A stretch of 64,000 bases of DNA from positions 62,001 to 126,000 of the forward strand of contig CBFFSA010000016.1 in assembly GCA_965644495.1 (NCBI GenBank), in the 5' to 3' direction. Every line of letters starts with the position of its first letter. Position 1 is the stretch's first letter. The notes beneath the pieces are model-generated. The model searched no databases. It was not told the DNA's origin and saw nothing but the letters and a program-made list of their open reading frames with translations. The stretch is from Perkinsela sp. CCAP 1560/9 (Eukaryota; Protista; Euglenozoa: Kinetoplastea). A program made the translations under genes and the position numbers. Of this stretch, positions 4,691 to 64,000 are shown piece after piece.

Positions 4691-4990
4691 CCGTATACCC
4701 CACCAGTAAGAGAATGGGTTTTGGGTCGAAATGGCTAAATCTCCCTTACTGGGGGGGGTATGCTTTTTTGACCAGTTTCCTCTTTTCTCCCAACTTTTTT
4801 GACTATTTTTTTCTATTTTTTCTTCTGAAAACGTGTTAAAACGCTTATTTGGGTTACCCCCGAGGCCCCCAACATGCAGGCACCCACCCCCTACCCCCTA
4901 TACGCCCCCTGTGGGGCGCCCGAGCCAAATCTCTCTTACTGGGGGTCAGCCCCAAAAGAGCCAAATCCCTCTTTTGGGGGGGGTATACGG
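4691..4990. mobile_element. 300-bp MITE, Tc1/mariner superfamily (CCGTA termini, pogo/Tc2-like)
   Basis: TA|CCGTATACCCC...GGGGTATACGG|TA; imperfect TIR extends further; internal CTCTTACTGGGGG repeats; a solo end of the same family at 21209-21253. Confidence 0.85.
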
Positions 4991-5136
4991 TATGCATCTT
5001 TATCCAAGACCTTGATGTTTCACATCAATCACTGAAAGAACTATCGGACATCGGAGGCGCCCTTCGCCTTGATTTCCTATCAGGTTATCCGTCGCCTTCT
5101 GAGTCGGAGAAAGTGCATTATGCATCTGCGCTTGGT

Positions 5137-5632
5137 CTATGGGGGTCCAGAGGGGGGGCGCAGGGGGGGTCCAGGGGGCGTACGTCGCAATTTTTTTCGA
5201 ATTTTTTGCCTTTCAACATCGAGCGCAGTGAAGTGGTAGAGTATGCCGCGGCAATAATTTTCCACCCCCCACCTGGGGGTGACCCCCCCCTGTTATGCGT
5301 AGGAGGGGTCCGACAAGTTTGAAAAATCCGAAATTTTTGGAGTGACCCAAAAAATAAATATTGACCAAAAAAGAAGTACTAAGAAGTAAAAATATTATTT
5401 TTCCAAAATCGACTCCTAACACGTATTTTAAGAGACTCAAAATGGAATAATTTCGAAGATAATAATTTCACATTTTGGTATGAATATGACCACAAAAAAT
5501 CAACAAAAAAAAATGAAAGTTTAAGAGTTTTGGACCTCAGCTAGAATTCTACGACGTTTTTTTCGGCAGATTAGCCTCCTGTCCCTACTGGTAAGGCATC
5601 AAAAGGCGGAAGAATTATTGAACGAAATGAGC
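5137..5632 (+). repeat. Dispersed repeat family copy 1 (probable non-autonomous DNA transposon fragment)
   Basis: Aligns by eye to the reverse complement of 38335-38735 (e.g. TCGAGCGCAG..AAGTGGTAGAGTA.GCCGCGGC..TATTTTCCACCCCC; AGGAGGGGTCCGACAA; TTCTACGACGTTTTTTTCG) and more distantly to ~8040-8330. Boundaries approximate. Confidence 0.8.
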
Positions 5633-6281
5633 CGAAATCCCACGTAGGAAGCACAGTGTGAATTACTTCGCACTAAAGGGCCTAGCGTCATAAGATCAAT
5701 CACACATGCTCGTAATGTTCGAGCTGTGACATGCCCCAAACTTGGTTCTACCCGGTGGATTTCTGATAAATTTGAAAGTATAAAGTATAGCTTGACTGGC
5801 CCGGCTCGGGTGTCAGTCACGCACACTTCCTGTACAATGGAAGGTCGGACGTTAACCTCATTCCCTTGCAAGAGAATTAAGAGGGCTGAAACTAGAGATT
5901 TACGATCCCGGCCGATCCCATCGGTCCTGGTTGAATTTACGTGGAAGAAAAGTCTTGGTGAAAACGCGAGTTCTAGAAATTCGGCGAAAGAAATAGCGAC
6001 CATTTTTTTACAGAAACTCATTCAATTGTTAAAAATCAAAAACAATATTCATATGAAGGTAGGAGAAACTAAACAAACATTTACTATTAAATAGAAAGCC
6101 CCTATATATTTTTGTTTCTCCTCTTTCGCTCTTTGGACTTGAGTGCAAATCTCTGCTGCGCGTATCCTTTGTCGTCTGATTCTTTTGCTTTAGCTGAGCG
6201 TTCTTTAAATTAAAGTACGTCCTCTGTGATTTTGACCCCTGCTCAGAACATTTTCCTATCCGACTAACGCCTTTTGAGGGG

Positions 6282-6819
6282 TTGAAGAAGTTCATCCAAT
6301 TGGTAAAACCTCTGACGCACGCGAAGCAGGTTGTCACGAGAACACTGCGAAGCGTTGGATTCAGCGATACGAGGAGACAGGAGACGTGGATAATAACCCG
6401 AGCTATAACCCTCATTGATGAAGGTACGCGAGATTTGCCTTATGGAATTCCGTCATGGTCGAACCTCGTGTCAACCCTTCAGTCCGAAAGGTTTTATTGT
6501 TCCCGGCGCTCTATCACGCGCACTTTAAAGCGTGAAGGCATCATTTTGCACACTGTCCCCCGTCATCCAGCTCTTACGGCTTCCCACAAGCAGAAACGAA
6601 TAGAGCTGTGCCGCGAGCTGTCGGAGTGGACCCCTCATGATTTTGAGCCCTCACCATTTTGATGAAAATAGTGTCACAATGCTAGCTTGGCCCCCTCAGC
6701 CTCCTGATCTCAACCCCATCGGAAATATTTGGGGACAAATTGAATCACACAAAAATACTAAATGTACCAAAAATAGGGGGGAATTGCGTGATGCAATACA
6801 TTCAGGGTTCAATTGCTGA
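6282..6819 (+). pseudogene. Tc1-family transposase relic with the catalytic core deleted
   Basis: HTH_Tc3-like RRSITRTLKREG...PALTASHKQKRIELCRELSEWT followed directly, in another frame, by WPPQPPDLNPIGNIW (consensus WPPQSPDLNPIENxW). Confidence 0.85.
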
Positions 6820-6964
6820 AAGTACTTTGTTGAAGGACTTTTCCCCCTCTAAAAGCCCGTACTGTTCTGTTTAACAAGTAAAGTACTACTTAACAAGCAA
6901 AGTTGATACGAGCAAAGTTGTAGATACGATCATTGTCGTTTTAGTATCGTTCTCCATTTTTTTA

Positions 6965-7059
6965 GTCTCTTCGTTAAACGCGGCAGTAGTTTTCAAGGGG
7001 AAGCGCGCAGCAGTGGTGTCATCTAAGTTGAAAACAACCACTACATTTAATGAAGAGCC
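6965..7059. mobile_element. 95-bp MITE with ~30-bp imperfect TIRs (GGCTCTTCGTTAAA-type termini)
   Basis: TA|GTCTCTTCGTTAAACGCGGCAGTAGTTTTCAA...TTGAAAACAACCACTACATTTAATGAAGAGCC|TA; a homologous end at 38213-38273. Confidence 0.7.
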
Positions 7060-7593
7060 TAATAAAGGATAAAAAGTGATAGAAAAAAGGTCAAAGTAGT
7101 AAAAAATACAGTGTCTTAAGAAGCTACGCAAGCGCCGATCCCGACCGATCCCACCCGATAAGTGACAGGGTCCTCCAGGTTTCAGCCCTCTAAGTGTACC
7201 TGTATTTACACACACAAGTCCGACCTGTTAGCCTCGGACCAGCAGGATTATAGGATACCTTACACATATAGGAAGTTTCTTTCCGAGCAATTATCCACTG
7301 TGGTTAAGAGCGAGCTCGAAAGTTTACGAGTACCACAATCCGTTCACGAGCTTACTAACATACTCGAAAATAATTCCATTACAGAACTTATTCAATGTGC
7401 TAAAGAGTTTCTTCAAGAGTGTGCTCTGTTGCGCGTTGCTCAGGAAAAATTTTCTGCTATGCATGATCGATCCATGGCCGCGTTAGTGTATCCTACGTTG
7501 CAACAACTCATAGAGTCCTCCGAGACTGCTCCTCTACACATGATTGATGCTATTAGTGGGTTGAAACCTGTGAAAGGCAAAACCTGGCAAAAC

Positions 7594-7931
7594 CATAGTG
7601 GCAGTTAATAATTATTATAATGGAAATTATTAATCATTTCTATTATAAAAAAATCCCAATTATCAATAATTATTAATAATTTTTCAATGGTACCTAAAAT
7701 ACTCAATTTTGCGGCCGTCTTCGGGAAAAAATGAATCTGCGGGAACAAATTTCTCTTTCTTGCGGACTGGCACAATGTTCGGCAGGTGGCCTAAGGAAGG
7801 GGGTGGTGAAAGGCGGGTGTGGTGAAAGACCGGGGCGTGTTCTTAATTAATGTTTCCACGGTAAAATAATTATTATTTTTTAAACATAATTATTATTAAA
7901 GACTAAAATTATTAATACTTCTGCCACTATG
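7594..7931. mobile_element. 338-bp MITE with 8-bp TSD (hAT- or P-like), nested in element B
   Basis: GGCAAAAC|CATAGTGGCAG...CTGCCACTATG|GGCAAAAC; AT-rich AATAATTATT subterminal repeats; the empty site (single GGCAAAAC) is in the sister element end at ~63261-63302. Confidence 0.9.
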
Positions 7932-8039
7932 GGCAAAACCCGCTTATGCTTCATAGATGTGGCGAAGCAAAGTGCTTTGTCAAAAATAGTGAAGAATATA
8001 CTTGGTCTCCATGCGCTGCAAAATATTTTTTGCGCTACA

Positions 8040-8330
8040 AAAGGTGAAACTTTTGAAAAAAATATTTTTCGAAATAAACCCCCAGAACGGGTAGCCGAGG
8101 TCTTGGCGCACATTTTCCACCTCCGTACTCGAGGACGACCCCCCCCCCTCGTATCAACAGGACGGGGCCGCCAAGCTCGGTATTTTCTGAAAAGAACATT
8201 GAAAAAAAAGTCAACTTGGCGAAAAACATGGCTTAAAAAATAGTTTTTCAAAATCGTTTCATCTATTGTATTTCGAGAGTTTGGGACCTATACTAGCTTT
8301 CTATGCCGTTGTTTTCACAAGATACCCCTT
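8040..8330 (+). repeat. Diverged third copy of the 5137/38335 dispersed repeat, inside element B
   Basis: Shared blocks ATTTTCCACC...GACCCCCCCC...AGGA.GGGG.CCG.CAAG and CAAAATCG...GAGTTT.GGACCT...CTAG..TTCTA. Boundaries approximate. Confidence 0.6.
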
Positions 8331-9002
8331 CTTGAAGCCGTGACACGCCTCCCGAAATGATGTCCCAAAAAATTGGTGTCCTGGCAAAACCAGGCGAAAC
8401 TGGGCAAAACCTGGCAAAACTCGGCAAAACTTAACAGGTTTCAACCCTCTTAATGTGCACGTGAAGCGAGTTTCTAACAAGAACGAACTGCTGATTTGGG
8501 GTTCACTAATGTGGTTTTCGCCGGAGTGGATTGTGCTTTTCGCATGCCCGCGTAACAAAACATCGATTTCTGTTGAGCGCGCCGTTCACGCAGTCGAACT
8601 GGTTCTCCTATTTTTGAAACTACGGAAACCGATTGGTCTAACTACGTGACGTGCGAGGATTACGACTGGACTTCAGAGCTAAGCGACGTGGACTGGTGGA
8701 AGCAAGTTGGCAAAAAACGTTTTCCTTCCATATAGGGATGGGCACGCAAATGTGGTGGGGTCAAAATTTCTATAGCTTGGCCAATTTGTGTGATGCACCC
8801 GCATATTACCTTTAACAACAACCGTACGTTACTTCTCTAACAATGTCACAGCCTGTGATTCCATTCTTTCTGTATTTGCGAGGAAATATAATTCTCGGCA
8901 AGTGAGCATAGGAATCGATGTTGTGGCGACTCAGATGTTTCTGCGAGGTAACGAAAAATCATTAGCTCATCATGCAAGCAGTGCTAAATTAAAGAATAAA
9001 TA

Positions 9003-9302
9003 CTATCCCCCCTATTTAATAGGGCTACGTGCGACCCCCTTTAATAGGGCCATTTTGTCTGGAAGACCAAAATAGATCAAATTCTTTTTCTCGAATCCGC
9101 TGCGAAGGGGCGATTTTTTTTTCGTGCCTACCCCAACAACAAAAAGTGTGTCAAAAGCGAGCAGCAGGACCTTGTTTAACAACGATAAAAAAAGGCGCCG
9201 CGAAACGGCGCCGATTTTTTTCTTTCACATTATTTTCCATGTACCTCCCTTTAAAAGGGCATTTTTCCCAAAATCGGAGTCCTATTAAATAGGGGGGGAT
9301 AG
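9003..9302. mobile_element. 300-bp MITE, TA TSD (Tc1/mariner-type)
   Basis: TA|CTATCCCCCCTATTTAATAGG...CCTATTAAATAGGGGGGGATAG|TA; internal hairpin GGCGCCGCGAAACGGCGCC. Confidence 0.85.
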
Positions 9303-9398
9303 TAGTAACTAATGAACAATCCCGAACGAAGTATCTCTACTCTGAAAAATAGCGATCATAAAGACAGAGGCTCCTAATGTGAGCTTGCGTTCTCCATT

Positions 9399-9477
9399 TT
9401 TTATAGATGATATAGATTTTATAGGTGATATAGATTTTATAGATGATATAGATTTTATAGATGATTGTAGATGATAT
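9399..9477. repeat. 18-bp tandem repeat (TTTTATAGATGATATAGA, ~4 copies)
   Basis: Direct inspection of 9399-9477. Confidence 0.85.
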
Positions 9478-10149
9478 TCGGTTAATCTACTAGCCGATTA
9501 GTACTAAATTAGTAATTACTCGTTGGTTGCATAGCTCAATGGGCGATCTTATCCGCATTACCCAATCCTAAGCCTGGGGAAGGTCCAAATCAGGACCGGG
9601 GGAGGAGGGTGGAGAAATTCCTTTTAAAACAAAAAGAGATATTTCCTCGAGGTTTTGATGACTGTTTAGAGTGCATACATGTTTTAAGCGTGGGTGGCTA
9701 TTAAGCTAGGATAGAATATATAAACCACTGTCCAGTTTATGACCATTGCCTATGACCAGTTACTGTGTCGGGGGGGGGCACAGTAAGTTGTCCTGGGGGT
9801 ATTTCGTGTGTCCCCCCCTCAGGAGGAGATCATTTTTAGATTTTAGATATTTGTTCTTTGAGCTTTTCAACACCTTTTATAAATTTTTCACGGAATTTTT
9901 AAAAGCGAGTCTGATAGCTACTCCACCGATAGCACAGAAGAACACGATACTGACGATGAGCGCGAAATTTCGGATCAAGAACTGGAGGTAGTTGATTTTT
10001 CGACTCTTTTCGATGAAAAAAGAGAAGACGGCTATACTTCATCCGAAGAAGACGAAAACAATGAGATGCGCAATCTAATCTTCTCGAGCAACACAACGTA
10101 CGTAAACGTCTTTTAAATAGAGGCGACCGCACAGCTGGAATCCCTGTTT

Positions 10150-11492
10150 CTGGGAAGAAAATTTATGCCTCTATATCTATCAAAGACAAGCGTTTAGCTG
10201 TCCGACTTTTCCGACACTATGAAGGACAAGCAGAGTGGTTCTCAAAGCTACAAAAAAAACTTTTCATGGCTACCAAAGGAAGGGTTTTTCTGAGATCACG
10301 TGATCAGCTACAAAAATGGAGGAAGCTTGTAGTCGATGCCGCACGCGGAATGGGAAACAGAAAAAAGGTTGCGCACTCGTCCTCGTTCAACTGATCCTGT
10401 TGGAACTGAATTGCTTGAATGGTACACGAACTTACGCTCGCAAAATATGAGAGTATCGGTGGCGGCAGCAAAGGCGAGAGCTCGTGTTATAAACGGAACT
10501 CCAGTTTCGAATAAGTGGTTTTACCGTTGGAAACGACAGCATGATATTGTGCTAAGGTCTGTTCAGCGCACTACTACTCGCACCATACAAGAAATTACCG
10601 CATTGCTCAACTCTTTTCATCAATTCCTTTACAATATTCTTTTAGCAAGCATTGTTAGTATAATAATCAACCTGGATGAAATTCCTTTTTCCCTAAGTGG
10701 AAGTATGAATTCTCGGTCCACTTTAAGCGATCGCGGATCAAGAAATGTTATTTGAGAGGACCCCAATTGGGATCGCCGATGCTGCTCTTATTCCTTCTAA
10801 TTATTCCTGCAATAATTGGCATAATAAAAAGAGAATGTGGTTTCTCTCCATTCAAATTGCGTTGCGCGGTACTGCTAAGGCGCAAATGTAAAAAGTCGTG
10901 GGTTCTTTCTAACCCTTTTGGTTGGCTAATTGAAGAAAGTTCATCCGGTGTTATCACAAGTTCAATGATGGTGGGTAGCATAATTCCTTTTATTCGTGGT
11001 CAAGTAACTCCTTTGCTTAGTGGAACCGAAGTATGCTTGACTATCATGGATGGTGCCACTGGGCATACCACTTCTCCTGTGAAGCGTTGATTTTCAGAAT
11101 TTTCGAAACTGGCTATCATTCCAAGTGGCATGACTCAATTTGTACAAGCGATTGATACGGACTACGCAGCGAAGTTTCTGCATAATTACACAATTCAACA
11201 TTACCAGCCTTGGGTTTTGACTGGCGTCCGGAAGATAAAGTCCAAAAGTGCTGCTGAACTCATGGTACGATGGTTGGGAAAGGCGCATGAAAAAACTTTG
11301 AATGAATTTAACATAGTCTCATGCTTCGAAAAACTCGGCTACAGCAATGGTACCAACATTGCAATATCGCGCCTTCCCTATACGTTTACACTGAGCGTGC
11401 CGGACGTAATGATTGTTTTGTTTAAGGTATCAGACAAGGATGTTCTATTTCGTTGGAATCTTAGCAAGCAATGGGTTCCTCCTGATTTCTGA
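10150..11492 (+). pseudogene. pogo/Tc2-family transposase pseudogene (CENP-B-type HTH + DDE_1)
   Basis: ELLEWYTNLRSQNMRVS...SNKWFYRWKRQH (HTH_Tc5); catalytic motifs IINLDEIPF, IMDGATGH, IIPSGMTQFVQAIDTD (34 codons between 2nd and 3rd D, including one in-frame TGA); frameshift near 10750. Start approximate; TIRs not identified. Confidence 0.85.
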
Positions 11493-12294
11493 GAAAAAAC
11501 AAGAATAAACAGGGCACGCATTCAATGTTACTGGGCAATACGTACTACTGCATTTAATTACCTCTAAATTAAGCAATTCAAAGTTACTACTACTACTACT
11601 ACTACAAATAAGTGGGGGGCCGCAGTAATTGTAATCTAAACAAGCTCATTGTTCTTTGTTTTAGCCCGTCCTGCGCGCACAAAATTCTCTTGATGAGATC
11701 TGCAAAGTGCAACAAAGTGGGGGGTCACTTTTCGTGATACATGTATTTCCAGTAGTATATTTATTGAGTATGTTAGCCTAACTTACTACTTAACCTTAGG
11801 TGTGTTTTGCTGGCAAGTGAAATGTACACCAGAAACAGCACCAGAGACAATATCGCCTTACATAATTCGATTTAGAAAACGCCTTCGGTTTTCTCCCACA
11901 TAACGACTTCTCTTGTTTTGGGGGGGGGGCGACCCCCCCCCCGATCATCAATTATATCAGAGCATTGCATACTGGAGCGTCGGTATAACTCAAGTGCTCC
12001 AATGGACTTGCCTCACAAGTTGTGACCAAAGTGCATCGAGTATGACATCTTGCGAACATGTCTACCCAACTACGGAGTAGTCTGAATCGAAATGCAGTCT
12101 TTCGTCAAAGCATTCGTCGACGACCTCACGATTGTCACAATCACTCCGAGAGGGCTCCAACATGCAACCAACCATTTAGTCAAAGTGCTAACTGTCATGG
12201 GCCTTCGGCTCAATGTAAAGGGTCAAAACTACTGATACCCTAAAGAGTGAGAATAGCCCTTACTTTATTCTTCATCCTCTTTTCTGGACTGAAG

Positions 12295-13212
12295 TCATGG
12301 CATCGTTCGGTACTTTGCATCATTCCATTGTGGAATGGCGCGGCGAACGTCTTGAGCGCCGCGTAGCACTTTAATAAGAAACTCACAAAGGGGTTCCCAA
12401 AAGTTGCACAAACGCAGAGGTGGCCCAGAATCTTCTTGATGGCAGTTGGTAAAGCTAAGAACATTTTCTGGATGAAATTTCCCCTTTTCAGGAGTATCGT
12501 CCACAAGTACTGTATTATGTGCGTACCACCTACCAAGAAGACAAACATCTCCAAGCCAAATCTTTCGAAGGTCCTTCACGGTTCCATAAGGCTTTTCAGG
12601 TGATGTATCGGGAGTGCAATGTTCGCGTGAAAGGACAGCAATAATTTTCGTTCTGCTTTTGCTGTCTAGTAAAGAATTCAAGCATTTCTCCGCAGTTTTT
12701 TTTAGCGAACTTGTCCAAATCGCCACCACAAAGTAATCCAAAAGAGTACGAATGGCGGATTCCGCTCCAAGAAGGGGCACACAATTTCCTTTTCGTGTTT
12801 TTCTAACCAAGACACCATTCAAGTCCAACATTAACAACACAGGGTACCGCGACAAGATGGATCTTTCAATATATTCATATGACATACAGCAAGTGTAACC
12901 TAATACGGAACGCAACGAAACGTAGCCTTTTCCGTTCCAACTTTTGTGCAAGCGCTTAATTTGCATAAATTCGAACACGCGATTATCGTTGTTTTGAACT
13001 GCAGGAGCGCCATGAACAGCCACAGATGGTATGAGTTCGTCCAATGCATACCTTAGAGCTCCACAGGGAATTTCAGATACCTCCGACCTCACCTTCACAC
13101 GTATCCAACGCTCTGGTTCAAGCAACATATCACCAAGCTTTTGTCGTGCATAGTTAATGTTAGAGTGTTTATTCCATACAGACTGTAGCCGTTTTAAAAA
13201 ATATTCTAACAT
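12295..13212 (-). CDS. NIF/FCP1-like HAD phosphatase-domain protein
   Basis: LLMLDLNGVLV, VAIWTSS, KDLRKIW, NTVLVDDTPEK motifs; first ATG at 13212. Confidence 0.85.
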   Translation of the reverse strand: MLEYFLKRLQSVWNKHSNINYARQKLGDMLLEPERWIRVKVRSEVSEIPCGALRYALDELIPSVAVHGAPAVQNNDNRVFEFMQIKRLHKSWNGKGYVSLRSVLGYTCCMSYEYIERSILSRYPVLLMLDLNGVLVRKTRKGNCVPLLGAESAIRTLLDYFVVAIWTSSLKKTAEKCLNSLLDSKSRTKIIAVLSREHCTPDTSPEKPYGTVKDLRKIWLGDVCLLGRWYAHNTVLVDDTPEKGKFHPENVLSFTNCHQEDSGPPLRLCNFWEPLCEFLIKVLRGAQDVRRAIPQWNDAKYRTMP

Positions 13213-13463
13213 CAACCCCCATATTTCAAAAAGGTGAGAAACTATAGACTAGAATGCTTCACAACTACACTGTGGACAAGATGCGTCCTACAAGTTGTGG
13301 GCTACAACTCATGTAGAAAATTATTAAACAATGTAAGCGACAAACATAAGCAAGCTTTTTCTTATTATAAATATTTTCCAGGACCTTGAAAAAAATCTAT
13401 CTTCATCTTATGTAACATCATAATAAATATACTTCATATCAAGAGAATGTCAGCGAATTTTCC

Positions 13464-14546
13464 TCATATGTCTTGCGACATTCTCGGCGGGTCAGTCGGA
13501 GGAATTACTCGAGAAAATAGATCTTCTTCACTTATCCACTGATTATTCACATTTTCTATTTCATGCGAAGCGGGCTTCGAAAAGGAATTTTCTTGCATTT
13601 CCAATAAAATTTCATTTGTCCTCTTGTTTTGCTCCTCTGTGAAATCTTTGGGTAATGGTGTAGTGTAAAGTTCCTCGCTATACGTGCTGGGGCCTTGTAC
13701 CAGCTTCTCGTTCGCGCCAAATTGGTCCCAAGTTCCAAGCGCGTAAGAACCTGAAAGTGCATCTTCGGAGGAGCCCTCGGATGTACTGCTTGATAATTCT
13801 GCCCCATCGATCTCTTTGGCCTGCATCGATTGATAATTGTGTTCCTTTAGAACACATTTATTCCACTGGAGACAGTGAGGTCGAAGATCCTGCGCTTTTG
13901 AGATTCTCAATAAGAATGGAAGAAGATTCTTTTCGCAAGAAGTCGGTATTCGTGGAACCGACAACACATTCTCCGCGAATTCCTCCAGTAAGGGAGCCGT
14001 GTCCTCATTTTCTGAATCCGAAGAGGAAGAAAGAAGTGCAGCGTCAATATTCGATATAAGAAGAGTGTTACCCGATTCCCACCTTCCGAAGTGGGATTCT
14101 TGTTCCCAAACATCCTTAAAAAGATGGGAAAGGTTCGCAGTCATTGGAGTCGTGAACTCGGAATTTTTTCGTTTTTCAGCGATGCTAACTATGGTAGGAA
14201 CAACGACAGCAAAAGAATATCGTACTCGTACTGTCTGCTCTATATGTCCGACGAATCCTAAAGCGTAGTGTTGGCGTAGTGTATCAAGAAACTTCATGGA
14301 ACTGTCAATGAACTGGGAAAGATACGCTGAGTCAAGGAGCAGCAATTTGGGTAATTCGGCTGAGTGCAACGCTAGTGATCTTGTGCTTATCCTCGAAATA
14401 TACCCATATTGTGAGTGAACGCGTGTTATGGTACTTTCTTTCCCAAGAAATTTGCAGGCTTCGCGGGGACTTGAGTGATTAGCATTATTTTTCCAAGGAA
14501 TACTGTCGCAGAAGAACCAGGTTCCAAGATCGTATTTTAAATCCAT
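13464..14546 (-). CDS. LsmAD-domain protein (ataxin-2/PBP1-related)
   Basis: WDQFGANEKL...STYSEELYTT...EILLEM...SEEDLFSRV near the C-terminus. Confidence 0.75.
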   Translation of the reverse strand: MDLKYDLGTWFFCDSIPWKNNANHSSPREACKFLGKESTITRVHSQYGYISRISTRSLALHSAELPKLLLLDSAYLSQFIDSSMKFLDTLRQHYALGFVGHIEQTVRVRYSFAVVVPTIVSIAEKRKNSEFTTPMTANLSHLFKDVWEQESHFGRWESGNTLLISNIDAALLSSSSDSENEDTAPLLEEFAENVLSVPRIPTSCEKNLLPFLLRISKAQDLRPHCLQWNKCVLKEHNYQSMQAKEIDGAELSSSTSEGSSEDALSGSYALGTWDQFGANEKLVQGPSTYSEELYTTPLPKDFTEEQNKRTNEILLEMQENSFSKPASHEIENVNNQWISEEDLFSRVIPPTDPPRMSQDI

Positions 14547-38212: not shown

Positions 38213-38273
38213 TTGGTGTCACTCATGCTGTGCACTTCGCGTTGAAAACTACCACCGCGTTTAACGAAGAGCC
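38213..38273 (-). mobile_element. End of the GGCTCTTCGTTAAA MITE family
   Basis: Reverse complement GGCTCTTCGTTAAACGCGGTGGTAGTTTTCAACGCGAAGTGCACAGCA matches 6965-7012. Confidence 0.75.
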
Positions 38274-38334
38274 TAAAAAAGAAAAATCTCCAATACATCA
38301 TGAATAATCTACTTTTTTGGGGGAAGAAGCTCGA

Positions 38335-38772
38335 TTTTTCTGCAAAAATTGCGAAATTTCACACCGAATTTGTGCCGTTTTAGATGCCTTACCAATAGGG
38401 GCAGGAGTCGAATCTGTCGAAAAAAACGTCGTAGAATGGTAGCTGAGGTGCAAAACTCTTAAAACACGTTTTAGGACACGATTTTGGAAAAATAATATTT
38501 TTACTTTTTTTTGGGTCAAAATTTATTTTTTTTTGGTCGCCCCAAAATTTTCGGAAATTTTGTCGGACCCCTCCTGCGCGTACCAGGGGGGGTACCCACA
38601 GTGGGGGGTGGAAAATATCGCCGCGGCCTACTCTACCACTTCCCTGCGCTCGATTTTGAAAAGCAAAAAATTCGAAAAAACATTCTTGACGTATGCCCCC
38701 CCCATGGACCCCCCCACTAGACCCCCCTTTTTTTTCAATTTTTCATTTTTGGACCACCGGAGCCCCCTTTTA
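38335..38772 (-). repeat. Dispersed repeat family copy 2 (inverted relative to 5137-5632)
   Basis: Long by-eye alignment with 5137-5632; lacks the ~90-bp segment at ~5434-5526 of copy 1. Confidence 0.8.
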
Positions 38773-39307
38773 TATTTTTTTCTTCTATTATATTGCTGTG
38801 TTTCTCTTTATATTTTCACTGTTTTTGTTCACTTTTTTTGCAATAATCGAGGGTAGAGCGGTAGTTATACAACCACCGCAATATTGTATGCAGTATGCAT
38901 ATTGTATACATATTGTATACAGGGGTACTTGTTGATGCGATAAATATTGCAAGGTGCTTAAAACGTACAGAAATTTATTTTTCCAGCATAAAACATAAAT
39001 ACGGTCCTCCACCTTACGGAGTCTTAACTAATATGGCGAACCGCTTCGCTTCTTCAATATACTGGATTACCATGTACGAAACGTTTTGTTTTCAAAGAAG
39101 AAACTATCTCGTGATAATGGGCAAATATTTTTAGGAACTCGAACTAGTATTTGAGGCTGATGTCCAAGCATCAGAACAACGAATTATTTACTGAGCTCAA
39201 AATTCGTGATGCATTAAGTGCAATGAATGTGATGTGAAGTTGGCATCACAATAGCACTGCGATGCGTTCAGGTGCATAGTCGCATCAAAAATGGAGATTT
39301 GCTATAC

Positions 39308-41287: not shown

Positions 41288-41379
41288 GTCATTCTTCCGG
41301 AAATCTATAAAGTTAGAGTCTATAAGTTAGAATATGCAACATTACAAGGAAATAATAATAAAATTATGTATACATAATA

Positions 41380-42132
41380 CAGTAGTATTCAGCCTCTTTT
41401 ACCCCCCCCCCCCTACAGGTCTTGCATTTTGTTCGATTTTGGAAATATTTTGTATGGGACTTTTTTCGACCCAATCGTTCCGAATCCGAGGTCCTTTTCA
41501 CTCGTGGGCACCTGTATCATACCTAAACCGGGAAAAAAACCGCAAAAAAGTCGATTTTTTTTTTCACAGAGTACATTTTTTTAAAAATTGGTACATTTGT
41601 TGGTGATTCATGAAGAAGAAGCACCGCCCCCTGTGCTTACCTTCCTGCCTCTTGTGCCCCGAGAAGCGCACGGCACTCGCGATCGATTGAGAGCGACTTG
41701 TCCTATAAGACACTCGAAAAATTTCATAAACTTAGCCCCGGGTCCATCATTGAAACTTTTCGCTTTTTTTCTGAAGATTAACCGGAAACGTTTAAGAATG
41801 CCTTCCGGGACTATAGTAAACGTTTTCTTTTGGTCAAGGAGGCTAAAGTGCATATGACTAAATACTAAAGATTACTTTGCACTCCTTTTACACGTCTTCT
41901 GACCTACTTTACTACTGTTCCTCATCCGAAGCATTCAAAAAAATGAGCCCAAAAAAGTTGTAATTAGCTTTTTTGACCCCTACCTGGCTAGGGGGGTAGG
42001 GGGTCGCTCGAGTGAAAAGGGCCTCGGATGCGGAACGATTGGGTCGAAAAACGGTGGTTTGTACCAAATATTTCCAAAATCGGACAAAATACAAGACCTG
42101 TAGGGGGGGGTAAAAGACGCTGAACACCACTG
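41380..42132. mobile_element. 753-bp non-autonomous Tc1-like element with ~130-bp TIRs
   Basis: TA|CAGTAGTATTCAGCCTCTTTTACCCC...GGGGTAAAAGACGCTGAACACCACTG|TA; inverted similarity continues through TTTTTCGACCCAATCGTTCCG.ATCCGAGG.CCTTTTCACTCG. Confidence 0.92.
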
Positions 42133-42303
42133 TATGTAGCTGTCTTTTTTATAGGCTATTAGCGATTAAAAGTTCTTTTAGGATAACTGTCAAAAGTGTT
42201 TGCGAGTACAGTACTGTACCCCACCGCATACAGTATAGTGTCAGGGGTTGTATGTTTCTTGCCAAGAAGCAGCAGTGGCAAACTCCTGCCACCTCCCCAC
42301 CTC

Positions 42304-49281: not shown

Positions 49282-49500
49282 GGGTGAGCGGAATAATGTA
49301 GTAAATGAATTGCTCTTAATTTTTTCATGAACTCAATATTATAAAAAAGTAGATATACATGATGTAGATATGCAGATGTACTGTTGATGTATGATGTATG
49401 TTTTGGAGAACAATCTTTTCAAATGGGCTTACAGTGTGCCAAGTTGGTAAAGTCCCAATAAATGATTTTCCAAAAATGTTAAAGTTTTCTCGCAACAAAC

Positions 49501-49948
49501 TGAATTGAGACCAGACGGGTGGGTGAAGTTGCACAACGGGTCGGAATACATCATTGAGCTGACTTCCCCTTGGGAAGAAAACTTCACAGACGCACACGAG
49601 CGTAAGGTTCGTAAATACTCTCACATCTATAACGAGAGGAAATTAGAAAACCCTTCCACTTTCCTCCTGCTTTTTGAAGTTGGGGCAAGAGGAAAGTTAA
49701 ACGCCACAACCCGCGCGCTGAACTCTCTCTTCGGAGGATGCAAGAGCCTTGCCTCCGAGTGCAGGGAGAGAATGGTCCAGCGGGCACTCCGGGGAAGCTT
49801 TGTTATCTACCAGCACCGCGACAACCCCACGTGGGAGGTGCAAAGCTTCCAATAAAGTGGTAATCCCCGAGTAAGTAGCACGTTTTGAGCGTGCTTACCT
49901 ACCTAGGGCTAATCTCTGCAGTAATAACTGCATGATTAATATACTATG
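49501..49948 (+). mobile_element. 5'-truncated RLE-type non-LTR retrotransposon (endonuclease domain + 3' UTR)
   Basis: LRPD...IIELTSPWEEN...AHERK..KY...FEVGARG (restriction-like endonuclease); exact 10-bp direct repeat CGCAACAAAC at 49491-49500 and 49949-49958; 3' hairpins AGCACG..CGTGCT and TGCAGT-AATA-ACTGCA. Confidence 0.9.
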
Positions 49949-52547: not shown

Positions 52548-52660
52548 TATATGTTTGTTAATTCTACAATCTAATAGATTCGGGTAATTTGAATATCTTT
52601 ACGAAAGTTATTGTTTGAGTTATTTACCTCTCGGCATATTATCAGGTTATACAGCCCGTG

Positions 52661-54328: not shown

Positions 54329-54508
54329 GGGGAATGGAGGGGTTGGTAATGGAATTTTTGTATAGAAAAGCTTGAAAACCGTTAAGAAATACGTAAAAAA
54401 TGGTGTAGATAGAAAAAAATACTTTTTTTAGCAAACGATTGATAAATGCATATCACGGGTTTCATACTTGACTGACGCACAAACCGGCTTGTCTTCCCCC
54501 CCATAGGC

Positions 54509-55840: not shown

Positions 55841-56057
55841 TGGATTGGATGGTTTCCAGAACGGATCAGGTAGGATCCCATTTAAAACGTATTAATGGAG
55901 GAAGGCTAAGTTCTAAATTTCGGAGAAAGATGTTCCAAAGTTGATAAAATCAGTGCTAAATACTTGATCGGGTGTAGTACAATGTACAATGTACTATCGA
56001 CGCAGTTTTTAAGTTGAGTGCACGATGTCTGTTAATGTATTCCGAGATACATTTACG

Positions 56058-56661
56058 CTATATTAAAGACATGAACGATTCTCCAAGAATTTTTGTTTCC
56101 TGGAGTGCACAGTACGTCATGCCAAGTGGAAGTGACTTCTTTTCTACTTCGCCCGATAACATTCTATTTGCACGCAGACACAGACGTTTCAAGCCCGGTG
56201 GAAGAGACGAAAATATAACCCAGCCGCTTAATTGATTTGCAGATAGATTCAGGACGGTCATTGTTGGAGGCAGTTCGGTCAAAATAATGGTCCCTTCAAA
56301 AGAATTGTACGAAGCATCAAGGGATTCCAAGCGTTGCGGTAAACGTGTGAGATCTATTTCCCCATTTAAATGGTTTATGTGTGCGTTGAATCGGCGCAAA
56401 GCATACGGCAGAGATTCCCATCTTACAGACCCTTTCAGTCTTAGTCGCTCACAATCGAACCCAACGACTCTCCCGTCCGGGGCACATTGCACTCCAAACC
56501 AAGAGCAGGCGGGAACGTTTGTAACCCACGAACCTGAAGGATTTCGAATATTGGCCAACATTCGCGACAATACAAAAAGAAGGCACACCTTTCACTCGGC
56601 CGGGGCGGCAACACGTCACCTTGGTTCCCTCGTCTGCGAATCCACCGATTATAAGAAACAT
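56058..56661 (-). CDS. LP-type leucine-rich repeat protein, with an apparent frameshift near 56580
   Basis: ACSWFGVQC, repeats WESLP/LTRLP/LTELP/FSSLP with N.(L/F).G. The track ORF starts at GTG; ATG 56661 (MFLIIGGFAD...GRVKGVPS) is in another frame and joins across a T-run. Confidence 0.75.
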
Positions 56662-56913
56662 TAGAAGATAGGAATTAGATTTTTCCATCAAAGATCACAT
56701 CAAAGATCTGACAATAATTTTAATGCTTCATAGAAAGAAGCAAACAAAGAAATAGTAGAATCACAACGGTTTATACAGAAATACAGTTTATATAGGAATA
56801 GAAATACGTGGACATACAAGCTACATGTACAAGTCTGGACATACATACAAGCTACATGTATCTAGCTAGCTAGAGGTTATCAACCTTATTGTCTTAAGGT
56901 ATGTGCCCTAGAT

Positions 56914-58317: not shown

Positions 58318-58603
58318 AACACAAAAAAATAGAATACCTTTTAATGGCCGCGCTTCAAAACTATAAAGAAAAAACTATGAAGAGTGCCTATTCAGCGATT
58401 GTTAAATTATCTGGCATGTTAGAAAGTAAGATTTTTTCGCTACAAGACTATTAGAAGTCCCACAATCACTTGTACTGCATGTTACCAGCTTTACACTAGA
58501 AGCCTCGTACGTCTCGTAAAAAGTAGGAATAAAGAATCAGAAAGTCGTCAGCCCTCGTTGACACCGTCTTTCACAATTCGCTGGTCTACGTACTAAATAC
58601 TAT

Positions 58604-59260
58604 TTACGCGGACAAATCGTACTTCGATTTTGCCCCATTCACCACTTGTGTGAGATAATGGTAAAAGAAATCACAGTACAGTAATGTTTGTATGGTACCC
58701 GCAACCCAGCTCACGTAGGACACGTAGCCCTCCACTAGATAGCGGTAAATCCAGTTCAGGACGTAAAAAAAGCGATACGCTCCAAGACAAAATATATAGT
58801 GCGAAGTTAGCGCCTCATAGCGCTCTGTGTTCTCCAGAAGAAATATTTGTGGTAGGATAGCGACCGACTCTAAATACTCGCTGAACGTCCAGAGAACTTC
58901 TCGGCCTTCATGTAGAGTATGGCGATGAAACGTGAGTGCGAGAATCGCACAGAAGCCGATAAGGTACTGAACACGGAAGCTGTCGTTGACTCTGTCGTAT
59001 GAAGCCTTCCATGGGTTTCGGCAACGCATCAGGTAACAAATGTGATAGGAGGTAAACAGAAATATCATTTTCATCAACGAGTTGTAAGCACTGACGTACC
59101 GGGAGAACAGGTCAACGTAGCGCGTCGTGAATACCATCGCATAGAGAACTTGTGTTTTTAAGGAGATCCCCGCGGAGGTTCGGTGGCGTAACATTTTTGT
59201 GAGAAGAATGAGCACCGCGAGAAGGTGAAGCATATCACCGATCAACCGAAATAAGTTCAT
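58604..59260 (-). CDS. ERD2: ER lumen protein-retaining (KDEL) receptor
   Basis: MNLFRLIGDMLHL, GISLKTQ, RYVDLF, WTFSEYLESVAILPQ, LGAYR..Y..NW, QTLLYCDFFY. Confidence 0.98.
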   Translation of the reverse strand: MNLFRLIGDMLHLLAVLILLTKMLRHRTSAGISLKTQVLYAMVFTTRYVDLFSRYVSAYNSLMKMIFLFTSYHICYLMRCRNPWKASYDRVNDSFRVQYLIGFCAILALTFHRHTLHEGREVLWTFSEYLESVAILPQIFLLENTERYEALTSHYIFCLGAYRFFYVLNWIYRYLVEGYVSYVSWVAGTIQTLLYCDFFYHYLTQVVNGAKSKYDLSA

Positions 59261-59536
59261 GGGTGGGCAAAAAATAGTAAGACACTAGCAACTTTAAGAC
59301 TTTTTGAAAAGAAAACAAATAGGTGTGATAAACGCAAGTATTCACGCATCTACAATTTGACAAAATCTATATCGTATATTCACCGCCCAGGAAAATAATG
59401 TCGATATTTGTCCCTTTTTTTAACTAACGTCATCACACATCCTAATCACTGCTACAAACACAATTTATTATTGGGTACCATGGTTCTTGACCACCGCGAC
59501 CTATTGATACCCAGGTCTACACCCCTCCACCTCTTC

Positions 59537-61033
59537 TTACGAATTTTCCCCGTCTGTGCCATACTCATTACCACTAGCCACGGCACTGTACGCGGCCCCA
59601 GATCCTCGCTCCCCTTCCCGTGGCCCCCCAAAGAACTCCTTCACCTTACTCCCCACCCCTCGCAGCGCTCCAGGCAGCGACACGCTCCAGAACACGTGAT
59701 GTGGGAGCAGCCCAGGGCACGTGCGCTCGCCTTGTCGGTACCGCAGCAATGCTCCCCCGATAAAATAAACCAACACAGCGCTAACGAGCAGAAAGAACAC
59801 GATGGCTCCTCTAGAAAGTCCTGAAGTTGACGCAATAAAAGTATTTACCGCGCTTTCCTCTATTTCTTCTGTCGAAGCCGCCAATCTTGGATCCGGAACC
59901 ACTGCCGGGGCTACGGTGAGCTCGACTGGAATCATATTTGTTTCATTCTCCCTTTGCTCTGGCATCTTCGCAGCCAGGTACAAATAAAAAGGCCGCGGAC
60001 TGACTTTATTCGTTACCGGGCAGCACGCCGGGGAGGCCAGCAGCCCGACAGGGTTACTATAGGACTCACTACAAATCGCCGTCGTGAAATTTCGCCGTAG
60101 CATCTCCGGGCTCACCTCCGGACTGTGCGCGAGACACAACTGCAGCCCAGAGTATCCATTCGGCTGGGAGGGCGGCAGAAACGAACTCGCCGCCTTCGCC
60201 AGAAACGCCATACGGAGATGCTCCCCGGTAACCCTTAGCACTTGAAAAGGAATCCCCAACGTCCCCTCCTTCTCCCCTCCCTGGCTACTGTCTTTTACCT
60301 CCTTACCCGGGGCCGGCAACAAATACACCCGACTCAGTCCCTCCATCTCCAACGGGGGGATACACAACCGGCTGTTGGCGACGTAGGAATAGAAGGCGTA
60401 GGCGATTACTTGATGGCTACTGCTACTGCTGCTACTGTGACTACTACTGCTGCTACTCCCCCCCACCGCCTCCACCACAATCTCACACGCGAGTACCCCA
60501 CTTGTGCTCTTCGCCGCGAGTGGGGCTAAGTCCGCGGCGGCTAGATGGAGAAACCCCTCGAGAGGGGTCGCGGAGAGCGTGAAGGACTGATTCGCGTTGG
60601 CAAGAGCTCCAGAGGATGCGTGGAGGATTACGGTCATGCGTGTGTTATGGATTTTGGGGTTTGTAGAGGAAGAGGAAGAGGAAGAAGAACTTGAAGGACT
60701 AGAACTCGGTGAGACGCTCTCTCCCCGGGGATGTTCCTCAATGCCAAAGATTAAATCGGTGGAACCATCCGGGAGGGGGTAGGTGAAGGACATGCGGTAG
60801 TGATGGGGGGAGGGGAGGGGCTCGTGTGGGGTGAACGTAAAATTGCCTTGGGTGGCGTCACAGAGCATGACGTCGGTGTAGTCGGGGAGAAGGGGGGAGG
60901 GGGGAGGGGTGGGGGTGGGATCGGGAGCGAGTAGGGAGGTGGTGAGGAGGAGGGAGAGGAAGGGGAGGCAAAGGGGGGTGAAGAGGAAGAGGAAAGGCGG
61001 CGGTAGGGTAGAGCCGCTTTCCAGAGAGCGCAT
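59537..61033 (-). CDS. Type I membrane protein with ATG27/CD-MPR-like TM and tail
   Basis: Signal-like N-terminus; TM GLSRGAIVFFLLVSAVLVYFIGG followed by LLPHHVFW..LP and a YSAV sorting motif. Confidence 0.6.
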   Translation of the reverse strand: MRSLESGSTLPPPFLFLFTPLCLPFLSLLLTTSLLAPDPTPTPPPSPLLPDYTDVMLCDATQGNFTFTPHEPLPSPHHYRMSFTYPLPDGSTDLIFGIEEHPRGESVSPSSSPSSSSSSSSSSTNPKIHNTRMTVILHASSGALANANQSFTLSATPLEGFLHLAAADLAPLAAKSTSGVLACEIVVEAVGGSSSSSSHSSSSSSSHQVIAYAFYSYVANSRLCIPPLEMEGLSRVYLLPAPGKEVKDSSQGGEKEGTLGIPFQVLRVTGEHLRMAFLAKAASSFLPPSQPNGYSGLQLCLAHSPEVSPEMLRRNFTTAICSESYSNPVGLLASPACCPVTNKVSPRPFYLYLAAKMPEQRENETNMIPVELTVAPAVVPDPRLAASTEEIEESAVNTFIASTSGLSRGAIVFFLLVSAVLVYFIGGALLRYRQGERTCPGLLPHHVFWSVSLPGALRGVGSKVKEFFGGPREGERGSGAAYSAVASGNEYGTDGENS

Positions 61034-61303
61034 AAAGGTAAGATTCTTGTGAAATGAAGAATATAAAAGGCGAAGAAGTAAATGAATGTGAAAAGCAGAT
61101 ATGGTTTGTTTTTCTCTTTTATGGAAATTTTCGAGTATAACAAGAGTTGTTTTGAACTATGAAGCTCACCTATCAAGTAGAAAAAAGAAAACAGATTCAA
61201 AGGCGCGTGCGACATGATCCTGAGTCACAGGTTTAAATTTAGAGGAAGAGCGTCCGCTCAGGCTTGTGTGAGGTTCCTTTAAAGAAGGAACCAGCATAAA
61301 AAA

Positions 61304-61549
61304 CTATTTTTTCCTGTAAAGCTCTTCAAATTTTGCGAATGTTGCGGAGCAGATCATACCAGCCTGTAAGTGACGCTCGAGGCACCGCCTCATACAATCT
61401 TCTTCCCACCAGGTCAGTCGGTGAGTCCAGTAGGAGTGCACACATCGAGGACTACATGCTTCTGCCGCACTCATGTGTAGCCGATCCTCTTGAAGTCCTT
61501 TGAGAAATGAGAACTCTTGCTCCCACTCCGCGCTAAATCGAGAAGGCAT
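61304..61549 (-). CDS. Small Tim chaperone (Tim10/DDP family)
   Basis: Twin CX3C: CSPRC...EEDCMRRC; 81 aa. Confidence 0.85.
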   Translation of the reverse strand: MPSRFSAEWEQEFSFLKGLQEDRLHMSAAEACSPRCVHSYWTHRLTWWEEDCMRRCLERHLQAGMICSATFAKFEELYRKK

Positions 61550-61957
61550 ATCTATAAATTCGTAAAAACCTTATTGTATTGTTCTATTTTGTTTTATAAG
61601 GAGTAGCGCTGTCAACATAATTTAAAATACAGTTACATTGTACATTTCGCTTGATTACTGAAAATCTGTTTTACCTCTATTATAACTTTTCGACTTTACG
61701 CCACTCGGGTTGAACCTTCATAACGTAGAAGCACCTATAGTGTACATCCTTGTAAACTTTATATCCCTCTCGAAGATTCCACTTTTGCCTGAAAATTTTG
61801 ATGAACCTTCTTCGGATGCGAAAGTCATCGAGCGCTTCGTGTTCTTGGAGCTTGCGAGAGTAATTAGTTTATGGTGGGTAAGATATAAATTTATTTACGT
61901 TATTGACAGAAATCATAAATTATGAACGCGGGCGGGTGCTGACGTTCTCATTCGTTA

Positions 61958-63302
61958 TAGGGTTGAAACCTGTGGTTTCAATGGAGGATAACATCATTGA
62001 GATGTGCGCACAGTGGATAACTACGCGCATTCGCCAACTCTCTGATCTGCTTTGGAATGCAGAATGCTTTCGGTGGAAATTTTGCAAGCGAGAATTGTAC
62101 CGCGGCACGGTGGTTATGTTAGATGCTGAGTAGAAGTTTGTAAACGAGTGGAAATCTAGGCCAGATTGTTTGTGTACATTTTTTAAGGATGATGCTAGAG
62201 ACAAAGAAGCAACAAAAGATTACCGCGACCGTATAAAGTGAGAACTTTACATTTCTGGGATCAGTAATGTAGGAAAGTGCCCAGCACATGCCAAGAAATC
62301 GGATGTAACATATACAAAGCTAACGAAAAGTGAAATTCTGAGGAAAAATGAAAAGTTGAAACTCATACACGATGAAGAACAAACTTCCAAGAGAAAGTTT
62401 CGCAAGTATTCCAATCAGATGGACAAGAAAATGTTTAATCAGAACGAATAATTTGGTGAAAGTGAAGCATTATTGCGCCAAAAAAATATTTTTCTCCAAT
62501 TTTCAAATATTGGTTTGAAACAAGTATGTTTTCTTTTAGAGTGTCAGATTATTAAAAATACAAACTTTTTTCACGGTTTATCACTATGAACTGCGCACAA
62601 TAACACAATTAATTAAGTTGTCTGCTGGAAGCCGAACCGTAACGCGCACTGATGGGTGGCGAGCGAGTCGCTCGCTGGGAAAAGACTTGCGGCATGAGAC
62701 AGTTAATCGTCGACGATCTTTGGTGCACACCAACACTGTTGAACGCATGAGTGAGATACTCAAGAAGGCAGTACGATCCCGTGGGAATGGGACCCTTGGG
62801 TGCTTTGATGAAGAAAGAAAAGATTGACCAAAGTTCAGCGGAGACGTCGTCAATGGTCTGAAGATCGGAAACAGCGAGGGAGATCCTTTAAAACAGCTGT
62901 GCGAAGATCTCTAATTAATGTGAAGACTCATCTTTTTAGAAGCGAAATCAAAAGAAATAAGTAGTAGCGGCCCATAAACGTAAAAAGATATCTGCATTTA
63001 TTTTTTTCAAAAAAGGCGCAATAATGCTTCACTTTGACCAAAAATTTATTCGTTCGTTATTATAATGTTATCAGAATCCGTGATACTATCCTCAGCGGTA
63101 AAAGAGTGGAGGAAGGCGGGTGTCCGCTAATTATTAGATAGGGTGATTTTTACTGAGAAAAAAGAATATCAGAATAATTTCAGTAAGGGCACGACGGAGG
63201 TCAAGTATTCTTCACTATTTCTGACTAAGTACTTTTCTTCACTACGTCAGAGTGGACTTCGCGGGTTTTGCCAGGTTTTGCCTTTCGTAGGTTTCAACCC
63301 TC
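61958..63302. mobile_element. TIR element C, same family as element B (3-bp TTA TSD)
   Basis: TTA|TAGGGTTGAAACCT...AGGTTTCAACCCTC|TTA; reverse complement of 63195-63302 aligns with 7556-7593 joined to 7940-8010. Confidence 0.7.
62588..62913 (+). pseudogene. Merlin (IS1595/ISXO2-like) transposase relic
   Basis: TDGWRAS..L....HETVN.....VHTNTVE (consensus TDxWxAY...HxTVNH...HTNTIE); after an in-frame TGA it ends GDPLKQLCEDL. Confidence 0.8.
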
Positions 63303-63425
63303 TTAGTCAACTGAGGCAAGTCTAAAATAATTCGTAGTGGACACATCGTCCAAAGTTTATAATGATTAGAGGTCAAAGTTCTCATGGCCTCGAACAGGGG
63401 TCCGAATAACTTTATATAGTTTATA

Positions 63426-64000
63426 CAGTGGTTTCAGTTGATCTTGCCCCCCCCTCGGAATTTTGATTTTTTTGATCCGTTTTTGCTCATTGGAGTTTTT
63501 GCAGCATTGGAGAGATCTCATTCCCCTAGCGAAGAGCTTTGCCGCCTTTTTTTCATAGAGACCCCCTGGTGCCCCCTGGGTTCAAAAAGTACTGTTTTTA
63601 CGGAGTTTTTCTGTGTACACAACCATTTTTTGCCACATTTTCCCGATTTTCTGTGTATTTTGCACTTGTAAGTACGAGTGATAGCGTTCTAAATTGATAA
63701 TTTGAACGCTCTATGTCTAGTACCCTCTCTATTGCATAGTTCAATTTAGTCAACACCTCTACATTATGAAGATCAGACCCTCATACCCCAAACAGGGGGA
63801 GTACGTCGAACAAAGTAATGACAAAAGAGAAGACAACCCCACAATGTGTGCGACACAATTGAATTCGATCCCAAATAGACTTCGAAGCGTGTTGCAAAAC
63901 AATGGAAGCCATTCCGGACACTAGTTCTTTGCCTTCAGAGGTAACTTTTGGACATAAAATCCGTTTTTTGCTCTATTTTTCATAGGTAAAAAAATGTCAT
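63426..64000 (+). mobile_element. Internally deleted Tc1-like element, right end outside the window
   Basis: TA|CAGTGGTTTCAG...CCCCCCCCT terminus resembling the 41380-42132 TIR; 63841-63924 encodes LNSIPNRLRSVLQNNGSHSGH*, like the Tc1 transposase C-terminus SMPxRxxAVIxxxGG. Confidence 0.7.

Follow-up and report, generated by a model that had tools for sequence, protein, structure and literature searches.

Can a kinetoplastid genome, with its polycistronic layout, be home to cut-and-paste DNA transposons? Kinetoplastids are the textbook case of a retroelement-only mobilome, with a handful of Merlin relics as the sole published exception. The question is raised by 64,000 nucleotides of DNA from Perkinsela sp. 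CCAP 1560/9 (contig CBFFSA010000016.1, positions 62,001 to 126,000 of the forward strand), a stretch that is called the window here over its full length. An earlier note on this DNA had claimed relics of at least four class II families, together with MITEs (miniature inverted-repeat transposable elements), in an apparent kinetoplastid, possibly of Perkinsela type. According to the note, trypanosomatids carry essentially only retroelements, and Perkinsela and Bodo have Merlin as their reported class II family. The literature agrees in both respects: a 2025 survey of 57 trypanosomatid genomes detected no class II element (PMC12278014), and the Merlin relics of Bodo saltans and Perkinsela are few and divergent, lacking terminal repeats and duplications (Lopes et al., 2021, PMC8101967). 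The literature searched contains no account of Tc1, pogo, hAT or Harbinger from a kinetoplastid; for the prior cataloguing that the note had allowed for, these searches give Merlin only. Our analysis makes it very probable that the window belongs to a Perkinsela-like prokinetoplastid genome with a large, diverse and recently active class II set, comprising Tc1, pogo, hAT, Merlin, PIF/Harbinger and MITEs.

The evidence that carries this reading comes from the genome as a whole (G000; 110 contigs that total 21.0 Mb, the longest being 4.1 Mb). Six-frame hidden Markov model searches matched every domain that the note had named (DDE_3, DDE_1, Dimer_Tnp_hAT and DDE_Tnp_IS1595) and added PIF/Harbinger as a fifth superfamily, which exceeds the four families claimed. 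The domain counts are lower bounds:

Genome-wide, DDE_3 (Tc1): 150 scored of 392 candidates, all 150 over the cut-off.
Genome-wide, DDE_Tnp_IS1595 (Merlin): 109 matches, 101 of them over the cut-off.
Genome-wide, DDE_Tnp_4 (PIF/Harbinger): 60 matches, in open reading frames (ORFs) of 347-431 aa.
Genome-wide, DDE_1 (pogo): 59 matches.
Genome-wide, Dimer_Tnp_hAT (hAT): 16 matches over the cut-off, in ORFs of up to 898 aa.

Many of these matches sit in open frames of full transposase length, for which Pfam confirms the expected domain sets. Tc1 copies reach 61 bits against DDE_3 (cut-off 28.6), and their catalytic domain aligns with that of Sleeping Beauty SB100X (4.6e-16) with the SDE, QQD and PIE motifs in register and the residues D, D and E conserved. 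A pogo ORF (locus L013) combines DDE_1, at 61 bits, with CENP-B_N; a Merlin ORF (L031) scores 52.6 bits and a Harbinger ORF (L045) 69.7 bits, and Dimer_Tnp_hAT was confirmed on the ORFs of L024 and L028. A BED zinc finger was absent from the Pfam results for the two hAT ORFs scanned, in which Dimer_Tnp_hAT alone was found; this is weak evidence, and many hAT transposases escape the BED zinc-finger model.

Near-identical copy pairs at separate loci were found for each superfamily: Tc1 at 98.7% identity, pogo at 98.1%, hAT at 98.9% over 3.8 kb, Merlin at 98.6% and Harbinger at 96.0-96.5%. The terminal repeats of Tc1 measure 39 bp, and in two copies each of the four ends is flanked by TA. The pogo copies of L011 and L014, 1,851 bp long including the TA at each end, terminate in TA-CAGTAAACGTCAC and its inverted copy (TA-CAGT ends), and the 3.8-kb hAT element ends in CATACCCTGG and its inverted copy, with an 8-bp duplication matching at 7/8 positions in one copy. 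The combination of intact ORFs, copies of 96-99% identity and, for Tc1 and pogo and less clearly for hAT, terminal repeats and duplications indicates what is probably recent mobility. Each superfamily is also split into subfamilies with a mutual identity of only 27-60%. The 91-bp 'inverted repeats' of a Harbinger element were rejected as such, being in fact direct repeats.

Two further loci can be described beside these families. A tandem array of at least 12 units with a 1,692-bp period occupies G000:C2:618440-637295 (L077 being its first 10 kb); each unit holds a truncated Merlin ORF of 182-241 aa, covering the second aspartate and glutamate region only, together with ORFs of 121 and 109 aa, and the array may be either a Merlin-derived macro-satellite or an amplified gene. 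Elsewhere, a 555-aa gene call with a reverse-transcriptase domain (L047:1-347, on contig ctg2217l of ENA analysis ERZ24900291) adjoins a Tc1 copy, so that retroelements coexist with DNA transposons here.

Is the organism a kinetoplastid? The large ORFs between 2.7 and 61 kb of the window all lie on the minus strand, as do those in the 10 kb beyond each window edge (~84 kb in total). They include the following array:

12295-61033, minus strand: intronless one-strand array of ~26 housekeeping genes, 78% coding.

Its products include a NIF phosphatase, an LsmAD protein, an MFS transporter, Alg9, Noc2, DLST (dihydrolipoamide succinyltransferase), a GTPase, cyclophilin-like and actin-like proteins, pyruvate kinase (PYK) and ERD2, among others. 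The window PYK scores 611-620 bits against trypanosomatid PYK structures, and the next group 487 bits. In a maximum-likelihood tree (IQ-TREE quick, 47 rows) its sister group, at support 98, is a Perkinsela clade on a long stem, whose members are two ENA contigs, one MMETSP transcript and Perkinsela sp. CCAP 1560/4; the remaining kinetoplastids together are the sister of this whole group. With all 120 PYK matches (121 rows), FastTree returns the same five-member group (0.996) within the kinetoplastid clade. The PYK identity between window and Perkinsela is only 58%. Gene order agrees with the trees: five genes, namely a 187-aa ORF, PYK and the actin-like, cyclophilin-like and GTPase genes, keep order and orientation from window 49281 down to 42304 on a 1.44-Mb Perkinsela-clade ENA contig (L054), whose counterparts are 30-57% identical. 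There the syntenic stretch has spacers of ~90 bp and no transposase matches, and is free of transposable elements (TEs) over 21 kb.

The PYK trees and this synteny bear out the kinetoplastid, Perkinsela-type identity that the note had raised. The window reads as a chromosome piece of a probably aflagellate, Perkinsela-like prokinetoplastid branching outside the sampled Perkinsela, and from gene loss and phylogeny we infer a life inside an amoeba. A second public assembly (ERZ24900291) is of the same organism, its contig ctg2217l being 100% identical to G000 over 3,420 bp. A spliced-leader motif search of the genome showed no spliced-leader (SL) RNA gene array. It gave four dispersed, identical copies of the spliced-leader-like 17-mer ATACAGTTTCTGTACTT (G000:C3:214243, C10:340891, C12:255057 and C21:14573), a count no higher than that of a reversed-pattern control; TTGTTG follows the 17-mer, and the copy that was read has no GT donor. 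Degenerate SL genes, or 5' ends of mRNAs that were retroposed, could account for them. Within the gene array, a 176-aa ORF (56058-56588, minus strand) has leucine-rich repeats (LRRs) and an N-terminal LRR cap. An ORF adjoining a pogo element on another contig (L020:2-712) shares 37% identity with it (E 9e-28), which suggests a dispersed LRR gene family.

What, then, do the transposons of the window itself look like? Pfam searches of the window ORF pieces gave three relic matches only (a Tc1 helix-turn-helix (HTH), a DDE_3 end and a Tc5/CENP-B HTH) and no hAT or Merlin domain. Because Pfam missed both in the window, the hAT and Merlin relics required comparison with the intact transposases of the same genome. 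A first island lies at 4.7-11.6 kb, with a 300-bp MITE and a pogo relic downstream of a nest of insertions:

4691-4990, unstranded: MITE-A, Stowaway-like, ~300 bp, with terminal repeat CCGTATACCCC and TA at 4689-4690 and 4991-4992.
5600-8970, plus strand: decayed relic of a hAT transposase, its four pieces collinear (5600-5788, 7336-7524, 8595-8747 and 8845-8970), found by tblastn with the intact hAT ORFs of L023 and L024.
5881-7190, unstranded: Tourist-type composite repeat of 1.3 kb inside the hAT relic, with terminal repeat GAGGGCTGAAAC and a TAA duplication at 5878-5880 and 7191-7193.
6282-6819, plus strand: Tc1 transposase relic (HTH and C-terminal DDE fragment), found by Pfam and tblastn.
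7556-8449, unstranded: MITE-B, Tourist-like, ~560 bp without its insert, with terminal repeat G(A/T)GGGTTGAAACC and a TTA duplication at 7553-7555 and 8450-8452.
7594-7931, unstranded: 338-bp MITE nested in MITE-B, with an 11-bp terminal repeat CATAGTGGCAG and a perfect 8-bp duplication GGCAAAAC at 7586-7593 and 7932-7939.
9003-9302, unstranded: 300-bp MITE with terminal repeat CTATCCCCCC and TA at 9001-9002 and 9303-9304.
9910-11390, plus strand: pogo-like (Tc5/CENP-B type) transposase relic, with HTH_Tnp_Tc5 at 10336-10755 (6.4e-7).

The four hAT pieces align to residues 181-244, 271-333, 392-444 and 453-494 of an intact hAT transposase of 526-530 aa from the same genome. The C-terminal pair reaches E 4e-20, with the C-terminal dimerisation region 62% identical to the genome copy, and for the middle piece the ORF at 7162-7608 matches the L024 ORF, the carrier of Dimer_Tnp_hAT, by BLASTP (E 1e-5). 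The gaps between the pieces are later insertions. In the composite repeat, of which partial genomic copies are 85-97% identical, the Tc1 relic is a passenger; it consists of an HTH_Tnp_Tc3_2 match at 6282-6662 (3.4e-7) and the C-terminal end of DDE_3 at 6637-6819 (1.3e-3), and matches a genome Tc1 ORF by tblastn at E 1.6e-23. MITE-B has at least 20 genomic copies of 84-88% identity, with matched TTA/TTA or TAA/TAA flanks in 4/7 aligned copies, and six other copies show an empty site where the 338-bp MITE is nested; the 8-bp duplication of that MITE fits hAT or Merlin alike. As the insertions fill the hAT gaps and other MITE-B copies have empty sites, the order is readable: hAT came first, then two TWA (Tourist-type) elements, then the MITE with the 8-bp duplication.

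MITE-A, whose first base is exactly the start coordinate that the note had given, has at least 15 genomic copies of 91-94% identity, with TA on both sides in 9/9 aligned copies. Overall, the MITEs of the window carry TA, TWA or 8-bp duplications and belong to families of 15-25 or more copies with 84-95% identity. Short multi-copy repeats were also seen at 5139-5604 and 11414-11600; copies elsewhere are 78-86% identical, and depth is raised about threefold at 11.4-11.6 kb.

The bounds of the pogo relic were set by paralogues and by a 588-aa full-length ORF. Its subfamily was found with the HTH piece of the relic itself, the first ten pogo loci having given no match, and includes two paralogues that are 56% identical, with full-length ORFs of 588-595 aa. 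In this subfamily Pfam sees only HTH_Tnp_Tc5; the DDE region was recognised only via BLASTP, in which a full-length ORF (L040) aligns to the DDE_1 region of the bona fide pogo ORF of L013 at E 8e-7. A PDB sequence search with the 588-aa ORF gave no match. No other DNA-level copies of the relic were found in the genome, in which it is unique at this level.

Might the TE blocks be chimeras of the assembly, or contaminant DNA of a host attached to kinetoplastid genes? The sample does appear mixed, as ERZ24900291 holds more than 4,000 contigs with metagenome-style names. When contigs of four runs from one study were compared over window 8001-14000, the pogo relic lay within single contigs, and in three runs its depth equalled that of the adjacent genes (3.0/3.5, 115/119 and 26/28.6), which argues against host-DNA chimeras, a possibility that the note had raised. 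Breaks in the contigs are confined to high-copy repeats, with depth there increased several-fold to fifteen-fold; at the MITE of 9003-9302, for example, the contigs of the four runs branch at 9001-9010 and 9297-9304 with an approximately fivefold rise in depth. Short unitigs chain across the TE-gene junction, both islands are flanked by kinetoplastid genes on the same strand, MITEs with clean duplications sit in spacers of the syntenic gene block, and the same TE families occur on dozens of contigs of up to 4.1 Mb. A chimeric or contaminant origin is, on this evidence, scarcely credible.

At the far end of the window, and continuing past it, a second island runs from 62.4 to ~66 kb:

62436-63061, plus strand: internally deleted Merlin element of ~626 bp, its coding relic (62618-62911) lying within inverted repeats with a 28-nt core, 96% matched, at 62452 and 63042.
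63141-63924, plus strand: heavily decayed putative Tc1 relic, with a first-aspartate motif 'RVIFTEKK' at 63141-63179 and a C-terminal tail at 63812-63922.

The Merlin relic matches five Merlin ORFs of the genome (E 7e-5 to 2e-4) and a sixth in L008 (E 1.2e-5), coincident with an IS1595-domain match. Its candidate 8-bp duplication, AAAATGTT/ATAATGTT, agrees at 7/8 positions, as chance would give among the boundaries tried. In the putative Tc1 relic the tail reaches E 0.005 and the other matches E 0.05-0.08, all in a 1-kb database; motif and tail are collinear and on the same strand, and the Tc1 identity is weakly supported. A hAT fragment and a further Tc1 relic lie just past the window end. 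Of the seven transposase relics that lie within the window or shortly past its end (5600-11390, 62618-63924 and L069:1911-2955), six face against the minus-strand array, a sample too small for a bias.

Set against the earlier note, the hAT relic that it had placed at 5648-8995, the Tc1 relic at 6282-6819 and the Merlin relic at 62588-62913 are all recovered, as are multi-copy MITEs with TA, TWA and 8-bp duplications. The pogo assignment (10150-11492) holds for identity, through HTH_Tnp_Tc5 and the paralogues, while its bounds move slightly to the left. For the 84 bp at 63841-63924 that had been read as Tc1, a collinear partner motif was added, with the weak E-value given above.

Between the islands, each of the three longest array spacers contains one repeat or MITE:

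38218-38887, unstranded: 670-bp interspersed repeat in a 1.8-kb spacer between two genes, with at least 25 genomic copies of 84-88% identity.
41380-42132, unstranded: non-autonomous Tc1-type element of 753 bp with ends CAGT...ACTG and TA at 41378-41379 and 42133-42134.
49488-49943, unstranded: 456-bp repeat in the 1.6-kb spacer upstream of the PYK block, with a 98% identical copy at G000:C15:192587-193041.

Neither a tRNA nor a tRNA-like head was detected by ARAGORN within the window, the 670-bp repeat included. The right end of this repeat (38844-38887) shares ~40 nt with the direct repeat flanking a Harbinger element (L073:5540-5583). The 753-bp element has inverted arms of ~130 nt that are 91-95% complementary, and at least 17 copies of 84-95% identity; together with head-to-head pairs of DDE_3 matches ~1.3 kb apart in the genome, it would point to a palindromic Tc1 build. 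The synteny with L054, from PYK to the GTPase, stops exactly at the spacer of this element (window 41288-42303 against L054:15398-15492), a single case. Summed by hand, TE-derived sequence makes up at least ~9.3 kb of the 64 kb, that is, at least ~14%.

Could the transposase-like sequences be domesticated host genes instead of mobile elements? Domestication has been proposed for the Perkinsela Merlin sequences that lack terminal repeats or duplications (Lopes et al., 2021, PMC8101967), and the tandem amplification of a Merlin-derived ORF described above (at least 12 copies, 1,692-bp period) would suit it. Yet the copies in the window are broken by stops, frameshifts and insertions, terminal repeats and duplications accompany the genome copies of Tc1 and pogo and, less clearly, those of hAT, numerous dispersed and nearly identical copies exist for every superfamily, and MITE families require an active transposase in trans. 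We regard domestication as highly improbable.

From where did these elements come? In a collection of 5.8 billion proteins, Tc1 reaches no more than 47% identity and Merlin 38% with the nearest non-self relatives; the closer matches that were looked up came from the other assembly of the same organism (ERZ24900291). No Perkinsela or Bodo proteins are among the matches to the Merlin or Tc1 of this genome. One explanation is that the transposons arrived by horizontal transfer from the nucleus of an amoeba host, which the note had named as a plausible route, or from another organism in that cell, and then multiplied. Intracellular life would allow physical access to host DNA, and the TE load looks lineage-specific, because the sampled Perkinsela-clade contig is free of TEs and only a few Merlin relics are published for Perkinsela (PMC8101967); the missing Perkinsela and Bodo matches speak for it as well. 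On the other side, no donor was found in a collection that includes amoebozoan transcriptomes, and subfamilies that are only 27-60% identical need long residence or many separate transfers. The low non-self identity and the deep divergence of the subfamilies argue against one recent transfer from any sampled organism, and the divergence probably fits long residence or several old invasions better. We consider transfer from an amoeba host, or from a co-inhabitant of its cell, unlikely. That class II transposons were received from the nucleus of the very cell lived in, and are perhaps exchanged with it still, seems quite doubtful; were it so, transposons would be passing between one eukaryote and another that lives in it as an endosymbiont.

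A recently active class II set in a prokinetoplastid stands as the very probable reading. Several points weigh against it. All TE copies in the window are dead, and the case for mobility is built on sequence. The second of the two hAT copies has no duplication. Phylogenetic placement uses one protein, PYK, together with synteny, and the searches for the paraflagellar rod, radial spoke head and IFT46 (PF05149, PF04712 and PF12317), which gave no match in the 21-Mb genome, were made without a positive control. The runs compared for depth may be the source of the assembly itself, which makes that comparison one of internal consistency and not an independent replication.

As for mechanism, autonomous copies encode DDE/DDD transposases that would cut at terminal inverted repeats and paste the element elsewhere, an event that would leave TA, TWA or 8-bp duplications, and short non-autonomous derivatives would have been moved in trans. 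The window may be seen as the debris of this cut-and-paste process: an old nested island, a second island and single insertions in array spacers. Our inference is that mobility persists, that the elements owe their expression to read-through of polycistronic transcription, and that they descend vertically from an early kinetoplastid, trypanosomatids having lost them.

Here is a kinetoplastid in which Tc1, Merlin, Harbinger, pogo and hAT copies number in the hundreds and many seem to be functional. Since MITEs lie in the spacers of gene arrays, the polycistronic layout does not by itself exclude cut-and-paste elements, and their absence from trypanosomatids looks more like secondary loss or failed colonisation than an effect of genome layout. 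The TE load may help to explain a genome of 21 Mb, about twice the published 9.5-Mb Perkinsela genome, and native transposases are candidates for genetic tools in kinetoplastids.

How does this set compare with known systems? The published Merlin of Perkinsela CCAP 1560/4 and Bodo belongs to the same class of organisms (Kinetoplastea) and the same superfamily, with the DDE_Tnp_IS1595 domain found here. In contrast to it, domain matches in the present genome number at least 109, with ORFs of 330-450 aa and copy pairs of 98.6% identity, and there are a deletion derivative with 28-nt inverted repeats and four further superfamilies. Similar to Tc1/Sleeping Beauty and Stowaway elements, the Tc1 copies combine a paired HTH with DDE_3, 39-bp terminal repeats and TA flanks, accompanied by TA-flanked MITEs, whereas the spacing, counted by hand on the SB100X alignment, is 35 residues and not 34. 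The DDE_Tnp_4 transposases of 347-431 aa and the MITEs with 3-bp TTA/TAA duplications resemble PIF/Harbinger and Tourist elements, with the difference that one Tourist-type repeat has a Tc1 relic as passenger. Finally, the trypanosomatids, with their mobilome of ingi, CRE/SLACS, VIPER and TATE, share the organism class and the polycistronic layout, and a reverse-transcriptase gene is present here too; unlike in trypanosomatids, class II elements are abundant and inserted even in spacers within gene arrays. No kind of element met here is new in itself; the novelty lies in a kinetoplastid in which they are present, diverse and apparently active.

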